A stretch of DNA of 58,323 bases from Phyllobates terribilis (GCF_046119375.1 NW_027367423.1:1-58323); one strand, 5' to 3'; positions 4,440 through 57,269 are shown, counted from the stretch's first letter. Notes: generated by a model from the sequence alone, not told the origin. Program-made: numbers and translations.

Positions 4440-7400
4440 TCACAACGATGATGAACTACCTTTCGTTACACCTGCTAAACAATTCTTCAAGTATGTATAT
4501 GACACAGAATCCACATTCGAGAGGAGCCCAAGAGGGTCACTGTTATCTGTAAAAGCATTACCATAAATATATTAGAACCAAAATTAAGTATATAATCTGC
4601 AGCAATATATATCACATCACATACATATCCTTGTTTGAGATACTGCAAATCAAGATCATCTTCAGAAAATCGCACACCTTTCCCCTGCAATATTACAGCG
4701 AAAATGATTTTTATTCTTACAATATCAAAATGAAAATGATGCAGCTATTCCTCGTATCAACCTTTTTTGAAATACAAGTATTGTGTGTGATGAGATGGTT
4801 TAACCTCAGCGGAGCTCGCGTCCATGGGCTCCACATCCATCTCCATAGTTGACAGCAATTTGGTTCTTGTGTACCTGCACTCACTCTAACCCACCCTGTT
4901 TTGTATATACTTTTACCCTGGCTGGTTAATCTATAGCCCTGTTTGTAAACAAATCAACAAGTCAAGATAATTGGAAAATGAGTAATGACAGAAAATTAGA
5001 GTATACCTTATGATGCTTAATATCCGTCGGTAGATTAACATTGAGAGTGCAAGAACTAGGAAAAGTTTTGTTTTCTATGTCAGATAAAACGGAGGTTATG
5101 ATTGGTAAGCATGCCTCTGCAGCTAATTTAAAATCATTAACCGTGCTTCTACCGGAAAACCTAGATGATCCACGATACATAGAAACTGTAAATGTCAATT
5201 AACAGATAAGTTATGTCGAATTATTTCACAGAGGAATTAAAAATACCAGTCGTAAGACAATGCTATAGAAGGTACGTCGTGGATTAAGGCCTCTCGAGCA
5301 CCAGCGACTGTACCCGAATACATACTGCCAGGTTATGATGCATTTATGCAAAAGTTAGAGACTCAAATAAGGGTTTGTTAATGGAAGGGAAAATCTACAA
5401 TAGCATATAATTTAAGAAGGGAAAAGAGTGAGCTATGAACTAAATATAGCGGCAAATAAGCAAACACCAAGTTCAGAAAAAGAAAAAAAACAAGGGATGT
5501 ATATATAACTAACACATGGTAGCCCCAGTTGCAACCCATATTTATGCCACTGAGTACCTGTAAAGAAAACATCAGAAAGAAAATGACAGACGTGATTTTA
5601 GATCACCTAAAAAGAATGGAAATAATAAATCCAATTCGACATTTATGGGTTGATATTGTCACACAGTAGCAAAGAGGACATAGAGGCAGTGCAGAACTTT
5701 TTTATCATTGTATATTTGCTTCAGGGTAATTTCGGTTACTGGTGACAAGCAGCGTAAACAGTTGGATTCTTTTTATACTTCTTATCACCACGATTTGTTC
5801 TGACCCAAAGGCAGGTACCGAATACAATAGCCAAACCTGGGTAATAATATAGCATGCTAGATTTTTAGGCATACACTAGTTTAAACCCGCGTGTCATGCA
5901 CGCGATTTATCCAATATTTTTTATATTTAAAATTAAATAATATATAGATATATTATAGTTTTTAAATATATATCAATAAGTAATGCTAATAAAATATATT
6001 AATCACAATATAAAGAAATATCTTTCTCATAGATCACAAATAGCAATTGTGTTTATATAAGACTTTGTTTGTAATTGTGACTCTGTGTATTATTTATTTT
6101 AGTAATTTCCTATTTCTCTTTATAAGATATCTTTATAATCAAATATAAAGGATAATATAATGCTAGATTTTTTCCTTGTATAAAATAGAAGATTTTGTTT
6201 CCAATTGAGATAATAAGTTAAATGATATTCTCAAAAATAATAATTCTCTAAATTACATTGCTTTATTTTATTAAGTCAAAGTATACTAGTCATATAATAG
6301 CAACATGTCTGTCAAATTGGATCCAATTTGGCTATAGTCCAAAAATTAACAACGCTCTTAAATTTGACACATGTAAAAAACTGTTCAAAATTAATGAGAA
6401 TATGACATGTGTCCAAATTAATGAGAGACTGTCACATAAGTTGGTTTTGATGTTGCTTTAGTATTATATAGATAGATTATTGATGAGTTACAAGGTGTGT
6501 TATTGCTTATTGTGCATACTGATACTGTCCATGTCACTTCATTTCTTTATCTAACCCAAAAGAGATTATATGTGATAAAGGTCAAACTCAGGGAGACTTT
6601 AGGAATATTTTAGTTCATATTACATATTTCTTTCAAAACATATGACAAGAAGTAATAAGCGGTGGGAATTATTGTTAATATTGAATCTCAAGAAGGAAGA
6701 ATAATTAGAGGGAGGAGAGAAAAGATTAGAACATTACCAGATCCGCTTTTGATGGAAACAGAGCTCCTGATAGGCCCAAAGAAGTACAATCAGCAGGAGT
6801 GCTGCAAAGACATATCAGAATCGGTATTGCAATAAACCCAAACAGTGATGCAACATTTTCGCTCACATAAAGATGAAACTTTGGGGGATTTAATGTGACT
6901 CTAGATAACAGAAGATTTAAATTTCAAGATAAGTCAAAGATGAATTTCCATTTTACAAGAGTAGTAAAATGTTACAAGTTCTTTTCCAATTTGCCAATTT
7001 TTGTCAGAACAAGTCAATTGCTAAATCTGGTGATAGCTAAAACGAATATCATCAGTCTTGCTTTTCTCATTTTTAAGAAGATAGTCTGATTTGTATGCAC
7101 AAAGGGACTCCACAATGCAAAATAAATTGCAACTTTTCTGCTAAGTTGTGAGTTACAAAAAATTCAATCACTCACTACTACAAGCATTGAACCATTCCAG
7201 CACAATGCAGAATGAACAATAACAAGCTAAAAAACTAGAAATTGGAATTTTTAGTTGACAGTACAAACCAGAAACTGCTGCTGCAACTGCACCATCAATC
7301 TTGACTTCCTGAACAGATAGAGGGTGTTGCCAAGTTATACTATGACTAGCTGCAGACTTCTCCCTGTAACAATTACCTTATTAGGTCATGGCATGGTGAA

Positions 7401-7977: not shown

Positions 7978-8202
7978 TCTTCTTGAAAACAAAACAGGCG
8001 AGGCCGTACAAACAACATTACCCACTAGGCCTGTGTCAGCGTTTTATGTCCTTACTGGCGTCGGGTCGGAAAGGTCATGTTCGGGTTTGAGTGTTTTAAA
8101 TTCTTGTTATTTCGAGTCACTTTATTTTGGAATTTTAGTTAAATTACAAATGGGTCGGTTATTAAAAGTTTAAGGATGTTTTTCGGGTAGAAATAACGTT
8201 TA

Positions 8203-8709
8203 TGGTGTAAAATGAGAATTAATCTAGATTGTCAACTATTTTAAAAAAATGTAAGCTGGAGGTCCAAAATGCAGGTCAGAGACCAAAAAATGCATGTCAA
8301 TAAAAATGGAAGCTGGAAGCTAAAAAATGCATGTAAATAAAAATGCATGCCGGAGGTCTTTTTATGCATGTATATTTTGCATGCAGTTTTAACACATAAG
8401 CATGCATTTTTCGCACATAAGCATGCACTTTCATTTTTAATCAAAATGAAAATTCATGTGTTGAAAATGCATACTTATGTGCGAAAAATGCACGTTTATG
8501 TATGAAAAGTGCATGTTAATGTGTTAAAAATGCATGTAAAATATAGATGCATAAAAGGGTCTCCGACTTGCATTTTTATTGATTTTGGGTCTCCGACATG
8601 CATTATTATTGGCATGCATTTTTAGACCAACTGGCATGCATTTTTTGGCCTCCGGCTTGCATTTTCTTGAAATTATATGATTATTTAAATTTGTTCTCAT
8701 TTTACACCA
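8203..8709. mobile_element. MITE with TA target duplication and many internal AATGCA(T) repeats
   Basis: TIRs TGGTGTAAAATGAGAA / TTCTCATTTTACACCA, flanked by TA on both sides. Confidence 0.7.
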
Positions 8710-8823
8710 TAAGATTTGTTTGCATCTGATACTTTTCCAAAGTTTAATATCCAGTTGATTTAACATATTGGTTTATGTGGATATTTTTTTGTTTTTTAGA
8801 ATTGTTTTCATTTGAAGACAGGT

Positions 8824-9048
8824 AGGGATTTGTTAGGCTTGAGTATTTATAAAAAAAATCATTATTTATAAAGAGGGTTTTAATAATAAGTTTTTTTAAT
8901 TAAAAAGTACTTTTTATATTTTTTTAGATAAATTAGAGTATGGGAAGATAAATAAAAGTAATTAATTACATATTTTTTTGAAAAGAAGAAAAGTACTTTT
9001 TTAGAATAAAGTCTTTATAAAGAATAAATATTATTTACCAAACGTAGC
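8824..9048. mobile_element. Degenerate Tourist-like MITE
   Basis: Ends resemble (G)GGATTTGTTAGG.. and ..TTACCAAACGTAGCC. The left end is similar to the reverse complement of the element end at ~11680-11703. Confidence 0.4.
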
Positions 9049-9807
9049 CTAGATGCTCAACGTTTTTAACTCATACACCATTTTCTACCTGCATTTAAGA
9101 TGTTTGTTGATTTTTATAAATATTTTCTACATGCATTTAAGATGTTTGTTGACTTTTATAAATATTTTCTACACTCATAATTGATATATGTTGGGGGAGA
9201 GGTCTGATTAATTGTATATTAGAACGACCAAAAATATAAATCAAATAAAAGATTTATTTTTGATATATGTTGGGGTAGAGGCAGGCTTCGTACAACAAAA
9301 ATTATGGTAAGACGATAGTATTAATGTAAGCTATTAGATTACAGAAAATGGATGAGCAAATTCTAATTAAATAAATAGGTTGAGGTAAGTTGAATTACTT
9401 TTAATTTAAAAATAAATCAATAAGGAGATATTGTAAGGGAGTTTAAAGATTGGATAGAGCAAGATTCTACAAAAATGCTATGCGGATGCTAGGCGGTGAG
9501 GAGGGCTAGCGCCTAGACGGATCTGTATTATTACACTTATTTTTGTGTTTTGACACCATTTCCTTATATGAAAATTAAAAAAAGACATATTTGATTCATA
9601 ATTGTCATAGTAATTCATAGTTTGACTATGTAAATTGCGATATAAGTATATAATATGTTAATTAATCATCCAAAATTTATAAACTTTATATAGTCTTCTT
9701 CATAAAGAAGATCTACAAGACTATAACAACAACAAAAAAAGCTACAATTTTCAACTTAGATTTCAACTAAATAAAATAGAAATATAATGTAATCCTCCCG
9801 TCTCTTC

Positions 9808-10966
9808 TAGGGCTGAGCACAGATCGGGTAAACCGAATTTTTTACCCGAACCAAACCGGTCCAAATCGAAACCAATTATTTCGGTTCGGGTATCGGTTTA
9901 GGAATCCTAGAAATTCGGTTTTTGGATCGGTTCGGATTTCTTCGGATCGGTTCGGATAAAACCGAAATTAAAAAAATAAATGAAATACTATGAATTATAA
10001 TAATCACTTGAAATTTGGGCACACAATACTAGGTCTATGAATATACATACTTAAGTAGTAATTTGGGCTTAAATACTATGCCTTATAATATGTGTAATAC
10101 TAAGAGTGTTACACATATTATAATGCAAATGGAAGAAGGTAACCTATCTTTATATTCATTTACTTATTCATTCTTAACAGTATTTTTTACATTTTGACGC
10201 TAATTAATAAGTAACTTTATCTTTATATTTCACGAATTTTGAGAAAAACATGTCATTACTTAGCTAGGCGAGTATGAGTGACTGGTCTACAGAATTTTTC
10301 AACAAACTAGAGGTTCTATCTTATCTTCTTGATTTACTTTTGATTTTCAAATCAACTACTTTATTTGTTAATGTGTATGTGTTCAACTATTTTTATTTAT
10401 TTTACTTAAATTTTATAAACATCGTGCAATGAACTCTTGAAGTCTTACAATTGACAAGGAAACCTCATTTCATTGGAGTTGCGAAGAGAGAGAAGATTGA
10501 TATTATTTAGCAAAATATTGACATTGTTTTGAACATCTATGCATTTTGTTTGGAATATGTTAATTTGTATTTGGATATGAACTTTGAAAGTTAAACTTGA
10601 TATTGATAATTGACCATTTAAGTACTAATATGTTATTTTGATTTTTGAGACACCATTTATAAAATTTCATTACGATAATGACAAAGTTAAATCATTTATT
10701 AAATTTTGTTAAATAACAAAAGTGTTACACATATTGGACTGTTTCGATTTTTACCCAAACCGAACCGATCCAGAGGAGGACCGAACCAAACCGACCCAAT
10801 ATACATTGGATCGGTTTTCGGTTCGACTTTTTAAGGTTTCGGTTTTTGGTTCGGTTCAGTTCGATTTTATTGGATCGGTTTTCGGTTCGACTTTTTAAGG
10901 TTTCGGTTTTTGGTTCGGTTTCGATTTTATTGGATCGGTTCGGTTTTTGACCCATGCTCACCCCTA
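9808..10966. mobile_element. Non-autonomous hAT element
   Basis: TIRs TAGGGCTGAGCA / TGCTCACCCCTA, perfect 8-bp TSD GTCTCTTC (9800-9807 and 10967-10974), and subterminal AACCGA/TCGGTT arrays. Confidence 0.92.
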
Positions 10967-18105: not shown

Positions 18106-19738
18106 GATCCCAATTTTAGCCTTGTATAAAAAAATAAGATTACATATATTTAACAAAAAAAAGTAATATTACATATATTTAAGGTTTCTAATACTTATAT
18201 AAGAGTTACAAATATTAATGCATAAGACAATTCTAGGATTACATAGACTCATCTAATGTTTATCCATATAATGATATACATAATATTATAACATTTTATG
18301 TTTGCCATTTTTTTTATAGGGTTCTTAATAGAATTTTATGAAGAGATTTCTAAATCCTAAGAAAAATAATAAACTTATCAAAATAATAATAATAATAAAT
18401 TAGAAAATTTTAGTTATTTGAATGAAGAATACAACGAATTTAACTATCACTGATATATTAAAATTCCCATGTTGAAATCATCTTGTTAATTTTAGGGAAT
18501 TTTTTCTTAGATATATTTTTTATTAGATCCACTATTATCTCTCCTCCTCCTATTGGCCTAGTCTTTCCTTTCTTCTAATTATTGGATTTTAAAAAGATCT
18601 CATATTTTTAAAAACAAATTATTAAGGTATTTACAATTTAATCTAATTAATAATCTGATTTAAATGATTCTTATAAAACTTACTTAATAGTTATTATATT
18701 AGCAAATCCTTTTTTAAACTTAGATTTTTTATTTTTAAAATTAGTTACTATACTAACATAGATTTAAACATTTAATTAATTTTTTATACAATATATTTTC
18801 CCCCAAAAATAAAACCCTACAAAGTGCATTTCATGATTTTTTTAATTAATATGTTAAATTGAGTCCATTATTCTGATACTTTTTTATAAAAAAAAACTTT
18901 TTAGTAAACAAAATATTTTATATTAACAAATTTCTATTGATACTAACTATATAAAAACAACAAAAGTTTAACTACATAAATGAAAGTTAAAGGGTGAACT
19001 TTATTATTACGACTCACAATCTATTCAAAATCTAAATGACCGCACTTGGATTTCCTACATTATTATGATTATATTTAACATATTTTAAATTAGAGTAGTT
19101 TTGTTCATCATTTTTACTATTTTTACGGTAATTCTTCTTGACGCACTTTTTTGCTTTCTAACGCAGTAGAGGAATCGGCGGTTCCTCGTACTTAGAAACC
19201 GCCAGTTACTGTCTACAGAAAACCGCCGGTATGTGATTGAATCCAACCGCCGGTAGATCTAAAGGGGGAACCGCCGGTTGTCGTCTAGAGAGAACCGCCG
19301 GTTATGGGCTGTTAGAAACTCTCGGTTCATTGTAAATGCCAATTGGAATAGGATAAATCACTTTTAATTACTTTTTTACAAAATATAACACATATGTAGT
19401 CCTTTTAATTAAATTTTGACAAAAAAATATTTTTACAAGCCTGTATAGTAAGATAAGTAACTATTTCATTTGGACAAAAACTAGTATGTTTTACAAGCCT
19501 ATAACCATTTTTCAATTCATTAAGGTGGATATTGATGAGGTTTGTGAAATGGATATATCATAGTTAAAATAAAGAAACAATACATATAACTAAAACGAGC
19601 AAATACAACACTTATTGTCAACAACAGTCAAAACATACACCAAATCCAAAACATACACCAAATCCAAAACATACACCAAATCCAAAACACAAAACCGAAA
19701 TTCAAAACATAAACATATACGAAATAACTTCATGCTCA

Positions 19739-22090
19739 TCAATGGTTTGACTGGTTGTAGAAAGGGCGAAACTCATCAACTGACTTCCTTACTGCCTCAT
19801 ATACCTCATCTACCCGCTCATATGGTGGTTGATCATCGTAAAATGGTAGAATGTACTCGTGTACTCGGCTGGCACTCTGCTTGACAAGTATAAATATATA
19901 GGATCTAGTTGAATAAATAAAAATTAAAAATCGCAATTTAAGAGTGAAAATTCATATTATTACCTGGTATGATCTCACATCGGGAGAAGTAATGTAAGAG
20001 TGCATCCTTTGTAAGAACCAAGACATGTAAGGCTCCTCGGACTCCCATGGCACATTAGCGGCAACACCTAATTCCTCGATGGATAAGGTATGCCATCCTT
20101 GAGAACTCCATATCCAATACCCTTGGTCATAGTCCACCTTGTATGCCAATGTCTTGGGTAGTCTATGAGCTCTAATAGGATCAATCACCGGCTTTGGGAT
20201 CCGTTGCGTACGCCCAAATTGACTCACCACCCGGTATGGCATGTACGGATCTGTGTGGTGCAGCAATGTCAGGACCCCATGGAATAGGGAGGGACGTAAT
20301 GCCGTGTTATTGAAGTCAAGCTGACCGTACGTCATCCAATCAACCTACGCATAACATACAAATTAAATTAATTTAGCATTAAGTGTGATTAATAAGGTAA
20401 TAATTGGAGGAGAAGAATGTACTTACATCACGAGCGGTCATCCTGTCGAGGATTGCTCGATACCCCCCTACTACTGACGGTCTCTCAGGATGGTACCATT
20501 TAGATGCCCATGGCTTTGGAGCATCCTGGCTCCATCCGGGTGATTGAAGAGGCCTGAACTGTGGAAAGTACTGATATATCCAAGCCTGGTATTATGGTCA
20601 AAAACAATTGAAAATTCATACATGGTCATAAGCATTTGTGAAATGAATATAATGTTTTGAAATAGAGTTTACCTGTAGAAGAGTATAGCACATCGATACT
20701 TGTCGACATCCAGTCCGTGTACACTCGCCCAAGAACCGGTACAAGTGGCATAGGATGCCTGTCCTCCAAGCTAATTTGTCAACCTTATCGAGAGGGTTGA
20801 CGTACTCGAAATACTTGAGATCGATCTTCTTTGATGACTTGTCAGGAAATATCGTCGTCGACATCAAGAAAATCAAATACGCCGTTGCCCTATCGGTTAA
20901 AGTCCACTTATGCACCTTCGACACGTCCTTCATCATGTCGAGAAATTTATCGGACCAAATCATCCCCGACGGTGCAAGCTCTGGATCTATATTAAAGTAC
21001 TCCAAAGCCTGTTGTACCAGGTAATCGTGCCTAGCCTTGTAGGTCCCTAAAAGCTTGAGTTGTAAACTGAATGCCATGCTATTACCAAATATGGGCACAT
21101 CCAGATTGAGATGAACGTCATGGAGAGTGACCGTCATCTCTCCAAATGGCAAGTGGAACGAGCTCGTCTCCGGTTGCCAACGTTCGATGAACGCCTCTAT
21201 CAACTTTATGTTGATATCTGTATACATCAAATCCGGTACGTGCCCAAAACAAGACCCGTAGACAAATCCCCCCATAATTTCTTCTTCGACAATTTCCATT
21301 TCAGGAGCATGTGTATTCGACGTTCAAAAGTCATAGTTTGTCTCTCCTACAATCACACATAATTATAAAAATAACTAATATAAATTCAATGACAATAGAA
21401 GGATTTAGAAAATTACCTTGTTACGATATATGTCGTAAGCTACATGATTCTCAAACCCTATTAGCAATTCCGGGTTCGTTGGTCCTCCGTCCACCCCTTG
21501 TAATAACTTAGGGATATATTGTTCATTTGCTCTTCTTGGTCGCGCCCGAGACGAAGAAGCTTCCCTAGTATCCTCCTCTGCTCTCTCCTCAACCGGTGGT
21601 TCCTCCCTTTCATCCGGTCTCTCCGTCTCCCTTTCTGCTTCTTCACTTCCATGTACCCTATCCTCCTCCCTCTCAGCATGATCTTCTGGATCAACCTGTC
21701 CTCATTCAGAAATAGTAAAATGCATAAGTGAGTAGTTTTGAATACATTTACGTCATGATATAAAAGTTATCATTTGTCTTACCTCTGTAATACGAATACT
21801 GGAAGATGTGCCTGTTGGGTTGAGTAAATCAAAAGGCACTGAGTAATGATCGCCAGACTGTGAGACAAACTGTGGATTGGGAGATGAATACATGGGATGA
21901 GGAGGGTAAGGGATTTGATGCTGGAAAGTGGGAGAAGGATAAGATGATTGACTCGAATAGTACTGTGGAGGGGGCGGGTAGTACTGTGGAGGAGGCGGGT
22001 AGTATTACGGAGGGGGGGGGGGTAAAAGTGGCCTGGAGGAGACTGGTAATGATCCAGGCGGTGGAGTCTGGGGAGTGCATTTTGAGGCTA
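19739..22090 (-). pseudogene. Plant mobile domain (PMD, aminotransferase-like) gene of MULE-1
   Basis: LIEAFIERWQPETSSFHLPFGEMTVTLHDVH, FPDKS, AWRTGILCHLYRFLG and PYMPYRVVSQFGRTQRIP. The spliced upstream exons are acidic and Pro/Ser-rich; frameshifted. Confidence 0.8.
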
Positions 22091-23325
22091 TCAAATGAGT
22101 ATGATAAGGGAGTAGACCCCAAGTGCGACAGGAAATGCAGCTGTATGATTAGGAGCAGGGATGGCCTACCATGTGTGCACGAAATGGCTCCATATGTAAG
22201 GAATGAAATACCATTACCTCTTTCAAGTGTGCATCCATTCTGGAGGACTCTTAGCCTGCAACAAGATCCTTTAGATATTGATGTACTACAAGTCAGACGA
22301 GATGTGTACAAGAGCAAGATGGATGAGTTCGCGCACAATGATTTCAACAAACTATCTCTCGAAGAACAAACCAAGTGTCTATACGAGATGAATAGGATTG
22401 CACACCCTGAACAAACTGATGTGCATGACTTTGCAAATGTCAAACACAAAGGTAGACCTTCGGGTGCAAGAAATAAAGCAAAACCACCTCCACCACCATT
22501 CGGCGTGACCAAGAGAGTGCCATCTCACTGGGAGCATGTTGAAGAAGAAGTTGAGGATATGGGCACACCTCCCAAGAAGCAAAGGAACACACATAAGAAG
22601 ACGGTCTCGGAGGAAGTTCCTTCACATTTCCCTAACCATCTAAGAGTTCCCAAATTACAAACTTCCAAGACGTATTTCAGGTACTTGCCGAAGTTTTTGA
22701 TACAACATATAGTGGGGTGGTATGAAATTGTATCTGATGGAAATTGTGGCTATCGAGCTATAGCATTTAGTATGGGTGACTCAGAAGAGAGTTGGGTGAA
22801 CATAAGAGAGCTCATGATGTTTACAACCAAGACAGAATGGGATGTCTTAGAAAGGACGATGACATCACCTGGTACTATGCATGCTATGCTATTGAAGCTT
22901 CATTTCTTAGATCGGGATTGCTTTGCCCCCAACTTGGTTCGAAGTTCCAGATATGGGTATAATTGCAGCAACTGCTCTTAACATGATATTAGTAATCTTT
23001 AATAAGGGTGACAGCTCTACATACCCACCAATTAGGGCAAGGCCAGATTATGTGCAAGGACAAATTCTCCAAATCGTATGCCTTGGGCACGTGAAAGAAG
23101 AAAATCATTGGATTGCGGTAATATTAACATTCTAAATTGGTACATTTTTTCATTCACGATTAAATATCCTAATTGGCTATATTTCAGGTTCTTCTTGACG
23201 ACGAGTGCCCATTGCCCCCAATTACTTGCATGTGGGGATATCATCGCGAAGAATCGGCTTTACAGTTGATCGCTCCATATATGTCTCGTCTTCAATCTTA
23301 CATTGATAAACTTCATGCACATTAA
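22090..23325 (+). pseudogene. C-terminal half of a MuDR-type transposase (SWIM zinc finger + OTU-like domain) of MULE-1
   Basis: CSCMIRSRDGLPCVH (SWIM), KGRPSG, SDGNCGYRAIA and, after a frameshift near 22925, EENHWIAV; the last exon ends at TAA 23323-23325. The DDE core is absent. Confidence 0.8.
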
Positions 23326-25095
23326 ATTCAATGTAATTTTTTGTAAAATTTTTAGTAATAAAATCAATTACTTTGTTGCCAAAAAAGTGTTATATAAAAT
23401 CAAAATATACCGAAACATGGTGATTGACCTTAACATTCATCTCAATTTACTATGTAGTTAATAAAAATGACTAATAAACTTATTGAAAAATGTTAGTGTT
23501 ATAGGTAAATTACATTGCTCTATATATGGTTAAACGAGAGATGAAACCACATCGATATCATCTTGATAATGCTATAGGCTAGCAAACATTTTATTTTTTG
23601 TTAAAATATAGTATAAAAGACTATATATGTCTTATATATTGTAATAAACTTATTGAAAATTGAGAAAGTGAGGCCAATTGGAATATAAGAGGAACCGGCG
23701 GTTTCTGAAGCATGAAAACCGGCAGTTCCCAGGGTGCGATAACCGGCGGTTCCTAGGGTGGCATAACCGGCGGTTTGTGATGCTCAATAACCGGCGGTTG
23801 GTGGTGTGTAGTAACCGTCGGTTTCTTACCTGCGTTAAAAAGTAAAAAAAAAGCTGCGTTATTTAGTAACACCCTATTTTTATTAATAATTATTCACAAT
23901 TACATCAAGATTTCATCACTAAAGCAAATCTCATTTTTTAAAAATAAATTTCATAGATATGTTATAACAATTATATCTAATTAAGATAAATATAACGCGT
24001 TCTATATCTATAGCTTGTATATTTTTTTGGAAAGGATATAGCTTGTATATTTAAGTGCATGTATGAGACATATGTTAATTAAATTTAAAACAGAGGAATA
24101 AAAGTTCTCAACTCTAAAATTGTTTTTACAACATTTTTTGAAATTCAACTTGACAACTGTTTTTATTGACAAACCCCATTTGCATCCTTGTATGTTCTTC
24201 CATTCCGTCTTTTCAATTTTGAATGCATATAGACTACGCACATGACATGACATAGATAGTTAGATACAGTTCATAAATATCAACATTAGGTATTTAGGTA
24301 GAGCACGGCTATACTTTCAATTTATTTTATTGGATTAGTGAATAATCGAAGAAACCTCAATTTGTAAGTCTGAATTTGACCTCCACGTTCAAATCAAATA
24401 AAGAGAAGACATGACAATAAAATTGTAACAATTATGAAGCAAAAATATACCAACAAATATAAGTTGACATGAGGTAAAATGGATAAAATAAACTCCCTTT
24501 ATATACAAATACGTGTCATTTTAAATTAATTTTCTTATATATAAATACATGTCATTTTATTAACGTTTTCTTACTTTTATTATATTTATCTCTATACAAT
24601 TATTAGATTAAATCTATTTTATTTCTCTTTTTACTTTTCCAATACACTTTATTAGGATTATTTACAGAAGTAACATTCTACCTTAATTTGTATGAATTTT
24701 TGTCTAAAGAAATATATTTGTATCAGGATGGAGTAAAATACAATGACAGATAAATTTAAAGAAATTATGAAAATACTAAGAAAATGGGATAAAGAAAATA
24801 ATAGCATGAGACATAAACCATATTAAAAATTCCCAGCGTCATGTCATGTTTGACTAGCTGGATTGTAAAGACTGAGCAATATACATCTCATAACTTGTTT
24901 GAAGCAGACAATATTGAGCATATGATATATCGCCCCCTCTCTTTGAAGGCAATACCTACCACCTAATTAGAAATAGTTTAGATCAAGATCACAAGTACTT
25001 GCACATAAAAAATGTCGTTACATATACATATAAAATCAAACAGATAAGAGGAGATGGTGTTGTTGATGAATCTGAATAAATTTGTACATCAAGAT

Positions 25096-48900: not shown

Positions 48901-49356
48901 TCAGTCATTAGCGGTGACTAATTGCAGAGAGAGGAGCTCCTCCTCAGGGATGACTCTGATATGGCAATCCGATCTCGGATAGGCGGCGCAGAGCAGCGCG
49001 TAGCCACGCTCAACCACATCATCGCTCAACATTCCGTCACTCTGATCAACTTTACCGCTAATGAGCTTAGCAGGGCAAGTCATACAGACTCCAAGCTTAC
49101 AATCATGGGGGACATCCATTCCACTATCTAACGCCTTCGATAATATGCTCTCATCGGGATCCACTTCTAGCTCAGTCGACTGCCCTTCGTGCTCGACCAC
49201 CACTTTGTAGGAGCACACCATGGCGGACCATCTCTGTGTAAGGCGACTAGAACTGAGAGGGGTTTTGAGGTTGAAAGGGAGGGCTGATGATGGGTGTTTT
49301 TGTTTTGTGTGGATGATGAAGGTGGGAGGAGGAGTTGTGAGATTCAGTGTTGCCAT
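48901..49356 (-). CDS. FdC1: Chloroplast 2Fe-2S ferredoxin with C-terminal extension (FdC1-type), 151 aa
   Basis: CKLGVCMTC...LLCAAYP cluster ligands, EEELLSLQLVTAND tail and an N-terminal transit-peptide-like segment; single exon. Confidence 0.92.
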   Translation of the reverse strand: MATLNLTTPPPTFIIHTKQKHPSSALPFNLKTPLSSSRLTQRWSAMVCSYKVVVEHEGQSTELEVDPDESILSKALDSGMDVPHDCKLGVCMTCPAKLISGKVDQSDGMLSDDVVERGYALLCAAYPRSDCHIRVIPEEELLSLQLVTAND

Positions 49357-50140
49357 TTCTGGGATTTGGAGGATTAGGAGGATGGAGAATTCAAAGGCGG
49401 ACAGGAGATTGTGTGGTTGCTAGTTTTTCATCGGATAGATTTGGGCGATGGATTGTTTGCTTCCTTTTGGGCTTAGCATGGGTTGTGGTGTGTAATTTGG
49501 GCTTCAATTCTCTTCTGGGCCTTTACCAGCTTTTTCAACTACTTACATGTGTGTTTGGTGAAATCTTAGTAAAAACTTTTTTCTAGATAAATGTTTATTT
49601 CCGGATATTTTAAATTTTTAATTGTTATTGAATACAACTTTATATAAGGCTGTGTCTTTATACACTCCATTATTTGGCTGCGTACACTCCAAAATCAAAA
49701 CGCAATATTTTTGCGTTTGTAAAATTATCGCGTTTAGTTGTAAATTTGGATTCGGAGGAGGCAGATACGAAAAAGACGAAACGCAGGTATTCCGCGTTAG
49801 CGAAATACCTGCGTTTATATTTTTTTTTGTATGTAACGCAGTATTCTTGCGTTAGCAGGAATACTGCTAACGCAGGAAAAACGCGTTTGGCTGGTGCTGT
49901 TTCACACCAGCCAAACGCAGGATTCCTGCGTTAGCAATTTTCCTGCTTACGCAAAAATCCTGCGTTAGCAGGAAAACTGCTAACGCAGGAATCCTGCGTT
50001 TCGTGTTAAATGTAACCGTTTGAATATGACCGTTGGAAAACGCAAATTTTTTTGCGTTTTCAACGGTCATATTTTACGAAACACTATAAGTACATCTCCA
50101 TAATCCTTTAGGTAGAACAAATCATTTTGTATGCACAAAA

Positions 50141-53100
50141 AATGTCTACTAGTCAAGAGAAGATAGTAAAGTTACGGAAGATTATGAGGAGTACGTTGAT
50201 CATTTGCCCGATAATGATAATGAGTTTGATCATTTGCCCGATAGCGAAGACGATGATGATTTTGACGTTGATAATTTTCCGTTTAGTACTTATTTTTCAT
50301 ATATTTATACATTTTTATCCCTCATTTGTAGTAGATACAATTTGGTAAATATAGTTAGATGTTTGATTTGAATGTGTATATTTAGACAAAAAGTAAAATT
50401 TGGAAAATGTTTGAAAATACAGGGAAGATATTGTGGAAAGGAATTTGAGACTAACTTGAAATGAGAAAGTCGAGATGATTTGGTTGATTGGGTAAAGAAA
50501 ATGGGGAAAGAGTTGATGATGTGTTTAGTTATTCAACGAAGTACCATTAGATATGTTAGCTTGGTTTGTGAACATTTTGGAGAGCAAAGATTGAGAAAGA
50601 AAAAAAGTGATTACGTAGATGAAGGGGAACGGGAGATTGTTGTGGAAACTCGTGAAGGGAAGAAATCGGGGTGCACATTTAGGCTTGTAGGTGTAGCGGA
50701 GAAGAAGAGTAAGCATAAAACAATTGACCGCAAATGGATATTGCGCATAGTGAGTGGTGTACACAACCACAAATTGTTGACTCACTTTCAAGGGCATGCA
50801 ATCATCGGTCAATTAACCGAGCAAGAGAAGATATTGGTGCGGAGCTTAGGTGAGTCATATGTTCCCCCATCTGCTATATGTAATGCATTGAAAATCTCAT
50901 TTCCGGGGAATGTCACTTCGCCAAAACAAGTTTCAAACTATCTACAAAAAGTGCAATTCGTGAACCGTGGGGATTTGACGTTCACCCAATGGACGCTCAA
51001 TTTCTTAAAACTACGCAAATATGAAGTGTTTCCATTGAGGGAAAATCGGACCAATGAAGTGGACGTCTTATTTTTTGCACACGTTGACTCATTGAAGCTT
51101 CTTAAGAGGTTCCCGTATGTTATCGTCATAGACGTCACATACAAGACAAACAAGTAAGTGATACATCATTTATAGTTTATTAGAATTTATCAAATTTTGG
51201 ATATGTTCTTATGTTTCTTGTATTTTAACGTTAGGTATAACATGCCTTTGGTAGAGATTGTCGGTTTTACATGTACTCACAAGACATTCAACATCGCATA
51301 TGCGTTTACCAAGAAAGAAGAGATTGTTCATTACACTTTCATCATGAGAAAGCTTCGTTATTTGTGCGAGGAAGCCGGAGTCATGCCAACGGCTATAATG
51401 ACCGATCGAGAGAAATCACTGATCAATGCAATCCATATTATATTTCCGGAGGCTAAACACTTATTGTGTTGGGTTCATATAAAGCACAACATTGAAGCTT
51501 ATTGTTCCCCTCTTTTGAAGAATCCTGAAGCAATAAAAGCTTTTTGTGGACAATGTTGGAGACTCTTTTGCTCATATACGGAGGAAAGCTATGAAAAGAA
51601 GCTTGAGGAGTTGAAGAATTCATGGAATCCCGGGTTGGTTAGATATGTTAGAAGTGGTGGCTAACACCTTACAAGGAAAACATAGTTAGAGCTTGGACTG
51701 ACCACCATCTCCACTTTTTCACAAGAACAAGTAACAGGTATCGTAATTGTAAAACCTTATATATATTTTTAGACGATCCATAAATTATTGTCTTTATTAT
51801 TGTTGATTGTTTTGAAAAGGGTCGAGGGTATGCACAAGGTGTTGAAGAGAATTGTGGATTCAAGTATAGGCGGGTTTAGCAGGATGGTGGTCCGAATCGA
51901 CTCCGCGATTGACAGCCAAGTTTGTAAGATTAAGGCAAGCATGGAGATATCACGGATCAAGATGCCCACACAATACAACAAGATGAAACCACATATCAAG
52001 ATTGTGTTTTCTAGACTCTTTTATAGAGTATCAGATCGGGGCTTGATGACCTTGTATCATTTATACGAGCTATTAATTGCGGGAAAATTTAAAGAAGAGT
52101 GCGATGATTACTGGATGACAGAGTGTCTTGGCCTACCTTGCCTTCACACAATTGCTAGAGCTATCATTAAGAGGAGGCCAATCATGCCTTCCGAGATACA
52201 CCGCTTCTGGAAGCAGATTGATTGGGATAGGATAATCCGTTCTGACGCCGACAATGTTACAGGTGATGATGTCAATATGACTGTTGGAGAGATGAGGTGC
52301 AACGAGTTTTCCCAAAAGTTTCAAAGAGGTGAGCTAAAGAAATCAACAATAGAGCATATGGGTGATGTTTTCACAGACTTGGAGTACCCTAACGAGACAA
52401 CCTTGTTGGAGCCCACAATGATCAAGCCAAAAGGAAGACCCAAGGGGTCCACCAAGTGGTCCACGAAGAGAGATCCGAGTGGGTTCGAGTATGCGAGAGA
52501 GGATGTGGATAAGATGGAAAAGGCAAAAGAAGTAAAGAAGGGAAATAAAAGGGGGAGTCAAGTAAGAAGTCAAAGAAAAGAGAAAGAAGAACATGATGAT
52601 GTAGAGGGGAGTCAAGTTTATAACGATCATGAAGAAGTATCAGGATCACAATCTGTCGGGGAACCGATCACTCATTTGGGGATGGACTTTGGAGTCAACA
52701 ACATTGATTACTTTTGGTATCCGTTCATTAAGGAGGTGAAGGATGTAGCTGGAGACGGACATTGTGGGTATCGCTCGATGAGTGTACTTTTGGGTGGAAA
52801 TGAAGAAAACTACAAGAGGATTCGACTCACTTTGGCATCTCACCTGGTTGCCAACAGATCATTGTATGAACCCGCGTTAGCAAGACTAAATCCCGGAAAG
52901 TCATATGATAGCTACGTAATTTCAGTGAACTACATGTTGAGCCCTTGCCCACAGAGTTTCTGGTGCGATATGCCCATGGCCGGTCTGGTATTTGCAACAG
53001 TTTATCAAGTAGCTTTGGCATTCTTGTCTTGGAATGGTCCGTGCTTATGCTTGCCAATGATGACATCACAATCAAGACTGGATGGTGATGGACTTCGGAT

Positions 53101-53387
53101 ATTGGCAATGGCTCAAGTAGGCAAACAAAACCACTTCATACCGGTATGTCTTATTTTTTCCAGGTTTATGCTCAATTGATCATATTAACATATTTGAACT
53201 ACCTTTCACTTTTTCTTATTGTAGATATGGCTTACTGATGGAAGTCCTCTCCCCCCGACTCCATATGCATGGCATCAATTCAAACATATAAGTGTAGAAG
53301 GTTGGGACGAAACATTTGCTTCAAGGATTTCAATGTTTAGGGACTTTCGCGTTGCATATGGTCGATCGGCTCATAGTTTGGTTTAGG
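50141..53387 (+). pseudogene. MuDR/FAR1-type transposase with a C-terminal OTU-like domain (MULE-2)
   Basis: SKKSGC..HNH (FAR1/WRKY-like DNA-binding domain), IDVTYKTNK|YNMPLVEIVG, IMTDREKSLINAI, HLLCWVHI, RVEGMH, GLPCLH, GDGHCGYRS and QNHFIPV. In-frame TGA at 50462-50464 and a -1 shift near 51655; the 5' exons are uncertain. Confidence 0.88.
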
Positions 53388-53591
53388 AATCATGTTCATT
53401 GTACTTGGTTGAAGTAGTTTAGTTGGTGGAAATATTTCAATGTTTAGGTGATTGAGTTTAATTTGAACTAAAAGGCAAGAAATGATATATATCCAAAAAA
53501 CATATCCCGAAACACCAATACATCCAAAAAACATATACACAAATCACTGCGCGTCCGCCTGCCGCTATCCCCGCCTACCTCATGTACCGAA

Positions 53592-56210
53592 TCATGAAAA
53601 ATGTGCTCTGAAGGCTCTGTACGAGGGGAAGATGGGGGGACTAAGGGCTCTATAACCTGTCAACTGTAATGCGAAGTTCAAAAAATCAGACTTCACGTCA
53701 TCCGGTAAATCGGATCTCCTCGCCTTATACATCTGGATCTTCGCACCAACAGTCTGAGCACACTGTGTTAAAGAAAAACAAAACATAAGTATTAAATATG
53801 TCAAGTAAGCGTAATAATAAAAAATAAATTTATGCAACACACCGTCGTAGGGTCTGGAGGTAACGGTAATGGGTGAGGTCCTATGAAGGTTCGGTAATCG
53901 ACGTAAGGATGTGACATTTGCTTCCACCAGTCTAGATACTCTGGATGACACTCCCATGGTGGTCTGGCCTCTGGAAAATCACTGAGCACTATCAACGGCA
54001 TTGGAGTGTCTCCCCACTATAGCGCATCATCAAGGTAGGATAATGTCACCGAAGATCGTAATGAAGAGGTACGTGTCACTGTAAGGGGAGCGGGTGGTGC
54101 GTCAGGTATGCCTTGCCTACGACCAAACTGGCGCAGTACTCTATCGGGGAGATACGGCTCGTGAATTTGATCGTACTCGATCACACCTCAGAATCTCTAC
54201 GGAGCGAAATGCGGGTCGTCAAAATTGATCTCACCCCACGGCGTCCAGTGAATCTATATCATGGATATACATCAATAAAAGGTAAAAAGAAGTAACAGAA
54301 AAAATAGATAACAAGATACATATTAATATTAGAACTTACATCAACAACCGTGTACTGATCAAGAAGTTGGCGTAGTTTGATCAACCGCTTCGGATCACTA
54401 CCTTGAGGGGCCTCGACACCATCTCGTGCAGCCGCGCGAGTATCCATCTTCTCTTTGATATCGAACGAAGCATGGCCTCGTAAGGTAGGAAAATAGTGCC
54501 AGATCCAAGACTACGTAGAAATCAAAATTAGACTTGTTTAACTTAAAATAAATGCAAACTCCAAGAATCAAAATAAACGTGTATACCTTCAACAGAAGCA
54601 TAGGACCGGAGATGGAAGCAGTTAGACCTCGTGATGCGAGTCCTAACTATCTGTACAGGTATGCTAGGGCTCCAGTCCCCCATGCATAATTGCCGGTCTG
54701 GTTGTGATCGAGGAACATAGAGATGAGCTCTGGCTTGCAACGCATCCCAGACTTGTCTGTAAACAGGGTGCTTGATGCTAGAATCGCTAAATATAGCGTA
54801 GCGATATGATTCTCGTTCCTGTAAAGAACGAGATTCATAAAATAGTTCCAAATAAAATTACATTAACTATTTTACTTGATTCTATAATTTTTACCTCTCT
54901 GCGGCTTCACATAAACTCTTCAGCCTGACCTTCATAAATTCGCCGGTTTTGAAACCGGAACCTATTATTTGAAAAATTAGAAATTGTGTTAAATAAATTC
55001 TTTACAAAGTCATATATTAGGTCAAATAGATTTTACCAGATCCAAGTAGTCTCGCGGTAGGAATATCCACCCCTAAAACCTCCGCCAAAGACTCCCACAT
55101 GATATCATCACTCAAAGGACAGACCACGACGCTTCCATGAATAGGAATCCTAAGTATATTCACGACAACGTGCAGTGTAATGGTAAGCTCACCCCCGGGA
55201 AAGTGAAACGAGTTCGTCTCCGGGTACCATCTCTCGACGAATGCCGAAATAAGAACCATGTCTGTCCTTCGAAACTCCAAATCTCTCAAGCTAGTCAGCT
55301 GGCTAGCTTGTGCCAATGACCACCATGATCCGGGCTCGTCCGTCCGGAAAGCCTCTGACTCTGAGTAGTGGGGTTTGCGAGGGAAAGTTCTAAGGACTCT
55401 CCTCAACTGGAATAATTGAATCAGGAGTGTTATGTTTTGTATAATATTTATAAATGTTCTGTTAATTATAATACATACCGGATCTCTGGTGTTAGATGAG
55501 GGGAAAACTACTCCAGGAACCCTATCTGGGTTGACACCTGCCTCCACTTGAGTCGCCGTCCACAACAGGGGTGCGATGTGATGCGTATATGACTTAATCA
55601 ACGCCGACGAACGAGGCCCTCCAGGCATCCAGTTCCCTTCCTGACCAAAAGGTACGGGACCGACAGGTGGGTCTACAACCGGGTCAGTAACTGCAGGCCT
55701 CTGAACCTCAGGTGGAGAAGTACTAGAAGGTCCACCTGTCTCGGGAGTGGGGCGCACCTGTGGCTCTGGTAAAGGGAAAGTAGTGGGGATAACTGTGTCG
55801 GTAGTGGAAACCGGCACTGATGTCTGAGTCGGCTCTGAGGTCTGAGTCGGCTCTGATGTCTGGGTCGGTGGAGGAGGGGAAGGCGGCTGGTCCTCCATGT
55901 CCATATCATCATCTGGGGCAACCCATTCCTCGTTGTAGGCCGAGTCGGTCGCTTGTAGAACATCGGAGATATCGTACACCTTCTCCTGATGTTGTTGGCG
56001 ATCATCAACATCATCGTACATGACATCGTCGTGCTCAAAAGAAGGTATCGTATCTGTAGCTAAATCAACATCCAACTGTCTGCTCAAATCGGAAGCCTCG
56101 CCCCGTCGTGCCGAAGCCGTGATCCCTCGTGCAGCAATATCACGAGGACCAGCACGTTTTTCCTAACAGATCCACCTACCGCCTCCGCTATCCCCTTCAT
56201 TAGAAATTGA
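53592..56210 (-). pseudogene. Plant mobile domain (PMD) gene of MULE-2 with an acidic, Pro/Thr-rich N-terminus
   Basis: LISAFVERWYPETNSFHFPGGELTITL, LFTDKSG, YAWGTGALAYLYR and EYLDWW; spliced and with some frameshifts; start approximate. Confidence 0.82.
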
Positions 56211-56544
56211 AGTTACTATCAATATTCTAAATAATAACTAATTAATAACAACATATTATTTACAACTAAATAATAACAACATATTATTCTAAAATAATAA
56301 AAACATATGATTCTAAATATACCGTAGCCAAGTTGATTGGCGGGTCCGTCGGTGTTTTCGATTTCTGAGTCGGCTTCCTCACCTTCGGTGCCGTATTTTT
56401 CTTTTTCGGAGGTGCTCGTTTTCTTTTCTCCTTTACCGGGGCCTTGGTTGCGGCGGTGATGGTCGTCGCCGTCGTCGGACCGGCCGTTGAGATTGGTGCC
56501 GTAAGTCCGCTCCGAGGTCATCGGACTGCCGCCGGAAACAAGAG

Positions 56545-56720
56545 CAATGGAGGCTCGGAATCGGCCGAAACTGCGTCGGACCGGGCGGAATCCACCGGAG
56601 GAGCGGCGGGAGGGCCGGAATCGACGGGGAGAGCGGCGGGAGGGCCGGAATCGACCGGAACTGTGGCGGGAGGGCCGGAATCGACCGGAACTGCGGCGGA
56701 ATCGGCCGGAACTGCGTCCG
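56545..56720. repeat. GC-rich ~30-bp minisatellite in the MULE-2 subterminal region
   Basis: GCGGGAGGGCCGGAATCGAC(C/G)GG.. recurs with a ~30-bp period. Confidence 0.8.
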
Positions 56721-57269
56721 AATGAGCGTCGATCGCCGGCGTCGGGAGCACCAGAGGAGCAGCGGTAGAGACGTCTTCCATCGAGGAGTGAAACAAATAA
56801 ATTTCGCGTTCGTAAAAAATCTGCGTTCGTAGGGAGCTTTCGATTGAGGAAGGAGAACAAATATATGGCGAAGAAGGACTAGGGCCGGCGTTTTATGGAG
56901 GAAGAAGGTCACTGTTGAACGCAAAATTAATGCGAACGCATTAATCTTGCGTTTGACTCTACCAACCAAACGCGTAATTAATGCGAACGCATTAATCTTG
57001 CGTTTGACTCGCCCGTTTCCTGCGTTTTCCTCTACCAACCAAACGCGCAATTCTTGCGTTCGCCCGTTTCCTGCGTTTCGCTCAGGTACGAAGACTGTAC
57101 TTCCAAAGCACCCCTAAGTATATAAATTGACTGAAAACGCAAAAAATCTGCGTTTGCAAAAATCTTGCGTTTTATTTTGGAGTGTATGAAGAATTTTTTT
57201 GGAGTGTATATAGCCCTTTCGTTATATAAATTAAGGTGGATTTCTCCTCACAAATCTCTCTACTAAAAT

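Follow-up and report, generated by a model that had tools for sequence, protein, structure and literature searches.

We analysed a stretch of 58,323 nucleotides (GCF_046119375.1, NW_027367423.1:1-58323, labelled Phyllobates terribilis), called here the window, which is plant DNA with a G+C content of about 37% and which contains a Mutator-like element (MULE) of 7.6 kb at positions 49648-57220 with two convergent multi-exon genes. The first gene, located at 50142-53179 on the plus strand, is a transposase gene, and the second, a plant mobile domain (PMD) gene, runs on the minus strand from about 56781 or 56162 to 53882, each of them adjoining one terminal repeat. The 3' ends of the two genes are separated by a spacer (53180-53881), which showed no Pfam or homologue match and which recurs in the family at a depth similar to that of the two genes. 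A transposase domain, terminal inverted repeats and a 9-bp target-site duplication were all present, with a palindromic core in the duplication and unlike outer 11 nt in the repeats, and we hold this identity and architecture of the element to be very probable.

The transposase gene was delimited from frame segments, sequence reads and tblastn of homologues, and its likely exons are at ~50142-50285, ~50424-51153, 51235-51737 and 51820-53176, the first being an acidic N-terminal exon. From 50153 to 53176, all the large coding pieces share one frame, with the exception of a short stretch at 51652-51737. Two GT-AG introns were found, at 51154-51234 (81 nt) and 51738-51819 (82 nt), and the removal of both restores the conserved motifs KTNKYNMPL and TSNRVEGMHK. 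The MULE (RNase-H-like, DDE-type) catalytic domain lies at 51041-51661, split by the 81-nt intron, and matched PF10551 with an E value of 1.7e-20 (73.7 bits, cut-off 27.6) and PF21056 with an E value of 2.8e-4. Upstream of it, a FAR1/AFT-type (WRKY-GCM1) DNA-binding domain at 50540-50780 gave a weak match, below the cut-offs, for both FAR1 (E 0.028, 15.6 bits against 28.1) and AFT (E 0.016), as it does in the full-length homologues, where FAR1 is found at about 1e-4 and 23-25 bits, likewise below the cut-off. A SWIM-like CxC...CxH zinc motif was read by eye in the translation of 52100-52147, on which the Pfam SWIM profile gave no score. The HMMER scan of 1.8 billion representatives yielded 591 relatives, the full-length ones having 859-933 residues and including a protein of Aquilegia coerulea (P0074) with FAR1/AFT, MULE and the same C-terminal region. 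The tblastn matches of this protein and of three other full-length homologues (P0071, P0026 and P0031) span 50435-53344. Word-index searches yielded no close annotated relative, the best one sharing 52% identity with the transposase-OTU protein. Judged by its sequence, the product of the gene is predicted to be a FAR1/Jittery-type transposase with a WRKY-GCM1 DNA-binding domain, a MULE domain, a SWIM-like motif and a fused OTU domain.

The OTU cysteine-protease domain (52727-53152, plus strand) was assigned by alignment, PDB profile, fold model and Foldseek, and has DGHCGYR (52754-52774) as its Cys motif and NHF (53129-53137) as its His motif. In the alignment of 21 homologues, C42, G43 and R45 do not vary and D39, G40 and H165 hardly do, and a Trp is likewise invariant or nearly so; the resulting D-G-x-C-G-x-R and late His are the catalytic signature of the OTU proteases. 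The profile built from these 21 homologues and run against PDB sequences retrieved only OTU deubiquitinases, from an E value of 2.5e-6, namely nairovirus OTUs, OTUD5, OTUD3, OTUD1 and VCPIP1. The AlphaFold model of the region (pLDDT 86.3, pTM 0.81) matched OTUD3, OTUD1, DUBA and viral OTUs in Foldseek at a probability of 1.00, and the top PDB match was 4bou, with an E value of 4.7e-6 and a target-normalised TM-score of 0.75, followed by 4bop, 6dx2 and 3tmp, all of them OTU structures. PF02338 gave no Pfam match on the window protein even at an E value of 10 and was found in 1 of the 21 homologues (E 0.002), Peptidase_C65 matched weakly in 8 of them, NCBIfam gave nothing usable on the OTU region and the single-sequence search of the PDB with this region was suggestive only (E 0.039). 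The OTU domain and the SWIM-like motif lie in one exon, so that the transposase-OTU fusion is real. On the strength of the alignment and of the model, the C-terminus of the transposase is predicted to adopt an OTU fold that retains both the Cys and the His motif.

The PMD gene, a pseudogene of several exons at 53882-56162 on the minus strand, was recognized by PF10536 on three pieces, by tblastn and by composition, the exons being searched singly and not as a joined protein. The exon at 55017-56087 matched PF10536 with 52.5 bits (cut-off 34.9), and the pieces from the downstream exons cover the profile positions 101-159 and 272-295. The tblastn of the homologues P0151, P0154, P0155 and P0161 delimited four blocks between 55640 and 53882 (55640-55059, 54820-54575, 54510-54337 and 54253-53882), plus a short one at 56153-56103. 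The nearest PMD proteins, from Orobanche, Bienertia, Dionaea and Glycine soja, show about 50-57% identity over the best exon; some of them are annotated as 'Protein MAIN-LIKE 1', and these share with the gene a GGPxxxSxL...H[VI]A motif upstream of the PMD domain. The N-terminal part, from 56162 to about 55490, is rich in Pro, Asp and Thr (17%, 11% and 11%, respectively, over 175 residues). From these sequence features, the second gene can be described as coding for a MAIN-LIKE-type PMD protein with a putatively disordered Pro/Asp/Thr-rich N-terminus. In the homologue P0154, the alignment starts at residue 57, and further coding sequence is therefore expected upstream of 56162. A possible 5' exon at 56520-56781 (minus strand), Pro/Ala/Asp-rich and with an ATG at 56781, was deduced from the list of open reading frames and from a GC-rich (66%) tandem repeat of 30 bp and 5.4 copies. 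This repeat is located at 56549-56711, with the PMD exon on one side and the right terminal region on the other, and could represent either coding sequence of such an exon or part of a promoter. The exon at 54650-54862 (minus strand) also showed a weak match to DUF1985, the domain of VANC proteins (E 0.052, 14 bits against 35.1), which fits the relatedness claimed in the literature for PMD-C and DUF1985. No mudrB-like match was obtained in any of the scans, the second gene being the PMD gene.

The inverted repeat at the ends of the element has arms at 49639-49699 and 57170-57230, of 61 nt and 72% complementary. In the end-to-end alignment, a good match extends from TATACACTCC inwards over about 80 nt and is patchy beyond. 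Putative 9-bp target-site duplications, read directly from the sequence, flank the element on the left at 49639-49647 (TTTATATAA) and on the right at 57221-57229 (GTTATATAA); the two copies are identical at 8 of 9 positions and have the length expected for Mutator-like elements. The 8-bp core of the duplication, TTATATAA, is a palindrome, and it can therefore be read alternatively as a part of the inverted repeat, which makes the boundaries of the element good to a few bases only. The left terminal and subterminal region (49648-50100), defined by the inverted repeats I2 and I5, the end alignment, the dyad scan and the motif counts, has a repeat core at about 49648-49735 and is presumed to act as promoter of the transposase gene, whereas the right one (56800-57220), with a core at about 57135-57220, is presumed to be the promoter of the PMD gene. 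The main assertions of a first-pass annotation of this DNA are borne out by these data: the element extends from one terminal repeat to the other at 49648-57220 with convergent genes (arms of 61 nt, duplication of 8/9, MULE and PMD matches on opposite strands), its transposase is fused to an OTU domain (PDB profile and predicted fold matching OTU deubiquitinases only, in the exon of the SWIM-like motif), a PMD gene with 52.5 bits to PF10536 has the place and the orientation of mudrB in MuDR, and the N-terminus of its product is long and acidic/Pro-Thr-rich.

The same annotation had noted repeated AACGCA motifs in the terminal repeats. This hexamer is present in 41 copies in the window, 26 of them within the two ends of about 450 bp, so the observation stands as to the hexamer, but the real unit is a 19-bp dyad, AACGCA-N7-TGCGTT, of which the hexamer is a part. 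A dyad scan allowing at most one mismatch detected 11 dyads in the window, compared to 0.11 expected, and all are subterminal: the left end has seven (49699-50000), with a spacing of 34 bp between several of them, and the right end has four (56935-57154). At the same threshold, no dyads were found in the interior of the element or elsewhere in the 58-kb window. The dyad form of the sequence suggests a dimeric reader. Subterminal repeats are classical transposase binding sites, and the domesticated transposases FHY3/FAR1 bind CACGCGC, with an ACGC core as in the dyad; by this analogy, the FAR1-type domain of the transposase itself would be the simpler and obvious candidate for the reader.

Both genes of the window copy are pseudogenes. 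In the transposase gene, the ATG at 50142 and the acidic N-terminal exon are in frames that differ by one base, an in-frame TGA at 50462-50464 lies within the N-terminal DNA-binding region, where the homologue alignments pass through it, and a one-base frame shift is located at 51649-51650, identified by the frame change and by an extra G in other copies. With this TGA, frame shift and out-of-frame start, the copy does not have the open reading frame of an autonomous transposase gene. The PMD gene has four in-frame stops, all on the minus strand and within conserved homology blocks: a TAG at 54649-54647, where homologues have the Gln of YRQLG, a TAG at 54199-54197, a TGA at 54190-54188 and a TAG at 54019-54017. 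It had been proposed that the copy was probably dead because of the TGA at 50462 and a shift near 51655; both lesions were recovered, the shift at about 51650, but the damage was understated, since the PMD gene is broken as well and the transposase ATG is out of frame. With two pseudogenes, the copy could be moved in trans at most.

Parts of the element are present in nine public sequence runs. The contigs of four of these runs, under three organism labels, were aligned to 50200-56162 (5,963 bases) at 90% likeness, and hundreds to thousands of short high-depth contigs covered every bin of this interval. The ratios of PMD to transposase depth in the four runs were 1.16, 0.96, 0.66 and 0.82, with the spacer at similar depth, contig depth being a poor measure of copy number. 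The similar depth over the transposase, the spacer and the PMD gene supports the view that the two-gene unit is the repeated unit, which argues for a high-copy MULE family in which the PMD gene is an integral gene and not a one-off passenger. Positions 54019 and 54190, where two of the minus-strand PMD stops begin, are G in all contigs of the four runs and A in the window copy. The extra G after 51649, exactly at the frame change, is present in most contigs of run X4 and was seen in X2 and X5 contigs too. Three or more of the lesions are peculiar to the window copy. A few low-depth contigs lack long internal segments (51351 to 55347 and 51587 to 54961), the pattern that non-autonomous derivatives would show. 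Small low-depth skips in the contigs of X4 were considered as traces of splicing and rejected, their positions being different from those of the predicted introns.

A second MULE of a different family, with a PMD gene and a SWIM-OTU transposase remnant in divergent orientation, is found in the window at about 19150-23850. Its ends each carry six AACCGSCGGTT palindromes with a spacing of 24 bp (19173-19303 and 23693-23823). Its PMD pseudogene (19952-21731, minus strand) has stops and an acidic N-terminus, and its transposase remnant (21860-22981, plus strand) is an open SWIM-to-OTU half of 373 residues with the motif DGNCGYR, the first half being missing. Blastn of the studied element against the rest of the window detected no DNA similarity to this sister element; at the protein level, the transposase parts are about 23% identical and the PMD blocks 37-53%.

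More distant relatives were collected by an OTU-profile scan of metagenome contigs, which gave 80 loci (24-47% in the OTU domain), several of them duplicates of each other. The MULE transposase part lies directly upstream of the OTU domain in 51 of the 80; the flanks extend at least 3.5 kb downstream in 30 loci and at least 3.5 kb upstream in 29. At the locus L045, a PMD fragment at 5006-5194 on the minus strand precedes a transposase at 7999-10636 on the plus strand by 2.8 kb, divergently oriented as in the sister MULE, and no PMD match was found at L047, a near-identical transposase locus. At L041, a PMD fragment is located 7.5 kb upstream. The neighbours at the metagenome loci are mostly ordinary host genes, such as a CRE1/AHK4-like receptor, TPT and ZIP transporters, and land-plant genes in the flanks, for example the receptor of CRE1/AHK4 type, identify the contigs as plant DNA. 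OTU-bearing MULE transposase genes are common in the plant contigs of a few metagenome samples (L001-L080).

Apart from the two MULEs, the window contains a FRIGIDA-like gene, Copia fragments and a ferredoxin-like gene. Only 291 bp separate the ATG of the latter, an open reading frame of 151 residues at 48901-49356 on the minus strand, from the left end of the studied element. At this short distance, the element lies within the upstream region of the ferredoxin-like gene; Mutator elements favour sites upstream of genes. Copia-type retrotransposon fragments (gag PF14223 and RVT_2 PF07727, 43160-47374) are found just upstream of the ferredoxin-like gene.

Each component of the element has a precedent. 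The fusion of OTU domains to FAR1-type MULE transposases was described in 2006 in Medicago, with a suggested role in polyprotein processing (Babu et al., PMC1702500), and OTU and Ulp1 domains recur in Ginger1, Helitron and MULE elements, for which a link to ubiquitin signalling in repair has been proposed (PMC2836005). A rice MULE provided the first description of the PMD. MULEs have captured PMD-C on two or more occasions, the MULE-borne PMD-C being nested within genic PMD-C, and an anti-silencing use of the captured domain was speculated upon (Ikeda et al. 2017, PMC5418596). In a 2025 survey of active elements with terminal inverted repeats, PMDs were reported in several active MULE clusters with the same anti-silencing inference, and modular transposase-accessory pairs were proposed for MULEs, the variable N-terminus of MURA binding MURB (PMC12973397). 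The host proteins MAIL1, MAIN and MAIL2 counteract silencing by Polycomb at specific motifs that are palindromic in part; the same study reports a structural similarity of PMD-C to VANC DUF1985 and has transposon-encoded PMD-C, including those of monocot and eudicot DNA transposons, under test as Polycomb anti-silencers (Pelissier 2025, bioRxiv 2024.09.27.615353). We found no description in the literature of an OTU-bearing, FAR1-type element whose PMD gene stands alone and is convergent. The claim of the first-pass annotation that the locus was the best candidate for an uncharacterised system was too strong; its suggestion that the PMD protein may be a VANC-like protector of the element is reasonable by analogy and is itself a published hypothesis. 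The element is a variant arrangement of known parts, the OTU-MULE fusion, the MULE-borne PMD and the PMD/VANC anti-silencing being on record.

Compared to maize MuDR (mudrA/mudrB), the element has the same 9-bp duplication and two convergent genes driven from the terminal repeats, one for the transposase and one for an accessory protein, whereas its transposase is predicted to be of the FAR1/Jittery type, with an OTU domain, and not of the MURA type, its second gene is a PMD gene unrelated to mudrB, and its terminal inverted repeats are short, degenerate and accompanied by dyad arrays, those of MuDR being near-perfect over about 215 bp. The Medicago OTU-MULE transposases (PMC1702500) combine in one protein, as predicted for the element, a WRKY-GCM1/FAR1 domain, a MULE domain, SWIM and a C-terminal OTU; these reports, like those on Ginger1 and Helitron, deal solely with the fused protein, without reference to a PMD partner gene, and the OTU domain of the element is, unlike in the published OTU-MULE cases, too divergent for Pfam PF02338. 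As in the MULE-associated PMD-C (PMC5418596, PMC12973397), the PMD is carried by a Mutator-like element, but the published ones, from grasses and Amborella, are mainly fused to a MURA-type C-terminus, whereas here the PMD gene is separate and convergent. With VANDAL21/VANC of Arabidopsis, the element shares an extra gene (DUF1985 in VANC) and family-specific short motifs repeated in non-coding parts; its motifs are confined to the termini, unlike those of VANDAL21, and VANDALs have neither long inverted repeats nor an OTU domain. Maize Jittery and FHY3/FAR1 would belong to the same transposase clade as the element, judged by the type of its putative DNA-binding domain, and the dyad has an ACGC core like that of the FHY3/FAR1 site, Jittery being a single-gene element and FHY3/FAR1 having no inverted repeats, OTU or PMD partner. 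To our knowledge, mechanistic detail of the escape of plant DNA transposons from silencing is available for very few systems, of which VANC is the main one, and we know of no transposon-borne PMD for which DNA binding or demethylation has been demonstrated, unlike VANC.

Taken together, we interpret the locus as a decayed autonomous copy of a high-copy MULE family with a MuDR-like build, in which the PMD protein would serve as a chromatin accessory factor, and we give this interpretation a probability of about 0.6. That the PMD gene is an integral, selected gene of the family appears likely; that its product acts specifically against silencing is a more tentative proposal, drawn by analogy with the host and VANC proteins, and we would not bet on it at even odds. 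In intact members of the family, the FAR1-type domain of the transposase, probably as a dimer, would read the terminal dyads, the OTU domain would be a deubiquitinase carried along with the transposase, and the PMD protein would be an element-encoded chromatin accessory factor holding the promoters of the element open, in the manner in which host PMD-C opposes Polycomb silencing and VANC acts in VANDAL elements. A bolder version, in which PMD and the transposase-borne OTU would form a two-component anti-Polycomb device of intact members, would have the PMD protein mark the promoters of the element as MAIL1, MAIN and MAIL2 do at their motifs, and the OTU domain strip the H2AK121ub of PRC1 there, leading to escape from H3K27me3/H2Aub silencing; this extension by analogy we regard as highly improbable.

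Several observations weigh against the interpretation of the PMD protein as a chromatin accessory factor of a two-gene element. The outermost 11 nt are unlike between the two ends in the end alignment, and the exact termini are uncertain. No single contig of the four runs joins the transposase and the PMD genes, and the support from contig depth is not conclusive. As to expression or splicing, none of the nine runs containing parts of the element is on record as RNA. A PMD fragment lies nearby in only 2 of the 80 distant OTU-MULE loci: OTU-MULEs manage without a PMD, and the pairing is lineage-specific and not obligatory. Finally, the dyads are at the sites expected for a transposase, and nothing singles out the PMD protein as their reader.

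Among the alternatives, the PMD protein could be a MURB-like cofactor of transposition that binds the transposase, for example at the acidic N-terminus of the latter, and aids integration or timing, with no anti-silencing function. The position and the convergent orientation of the gene, as those of mudrB, agree with such a role, as do the binding of MURB by the N-terminus of MURA together with the proposed modular accessory pairs (PMC12973397) and the acidic N-terminal exon of the transposase; however, the PMD is unrelated to MURB and the experimentally known roles of PMD-C are all chromatin roles, and we consider a MURB-like cofactor unlikely. To the same degree we doubt that the PMD gene was acquired from the host and travels as a Pack-MULE-like passenger of no benefit to the element. 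MULEs do capture host genes, the MULE-borne PMD-C is nested in genic PMD-C (PMC5418596), host-like introns are retained, most of the distant OTU-MULE loci are without a PMD and the gene has decayed as fast as the transposase in the window copy. On the other hand, the gene is complete and multi-exon rather than fragmentary, and its N-terminal region, which is its own, faces a promoter at the terminus. It equals the transposase in abundance across the family in several organisms, and the second, divergent family of the window shows the pairing of a PMD gene with a transposase as well.

The terminal motif leads to another possibility, in which the PMD protein and not the transposase would be the sequence-specific reader of the AACGCA dyads, in a VANC-like way. 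Host PMD-C acts on specific, partly palindromic promoter motifs (bioRxiv 2024.09.27.615353), the two PMD-MULE families of the window each have their own terminal palindrome, and the dyads overlap the presumed promoters. Against this stand the FAR1-type domain of the transposase, with the similar site CACGCGC and its ACGC core in FHY3/FAR1, the classical role of subterminal repeats as transposase sites, the lack of any demonstration of direct PMD-DNA binding and the absence of dyads inside the element, so that we find a PMD reader rather improbable. It could also be argued, from an inverted repeat of only 72% identity, from the differing outermost bases and from the lack of a contig spanning both genes, that there is not one element at all and that the PMD gene is a separate insertion or host DNA between unrelated MULE ends. 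This we judge extremely unlikely, given that the transposase, the spacer and the PMD gene are repeated at similar depth in four runs, that the same dyad is present at both ends and nowhere else in the 58 kb, and that the PMD gene is not flanked by an internal pair of repeats.

The window copy, with both of its genes broken, is a pointer to the family and a record of its architecture and of its terminal dyad code. If the anti-Polycomb device were real, the transposon would encode a counter-defence of two components against Polycomb. The high-copy MULE family with a stand-alone PMD gene would offer a handle on the published idea that transposon-borne PMDs work against silencing, to which it adds a ubiquitin-type protease and a sister family with another gene arrangement and its own terminal palindrome.

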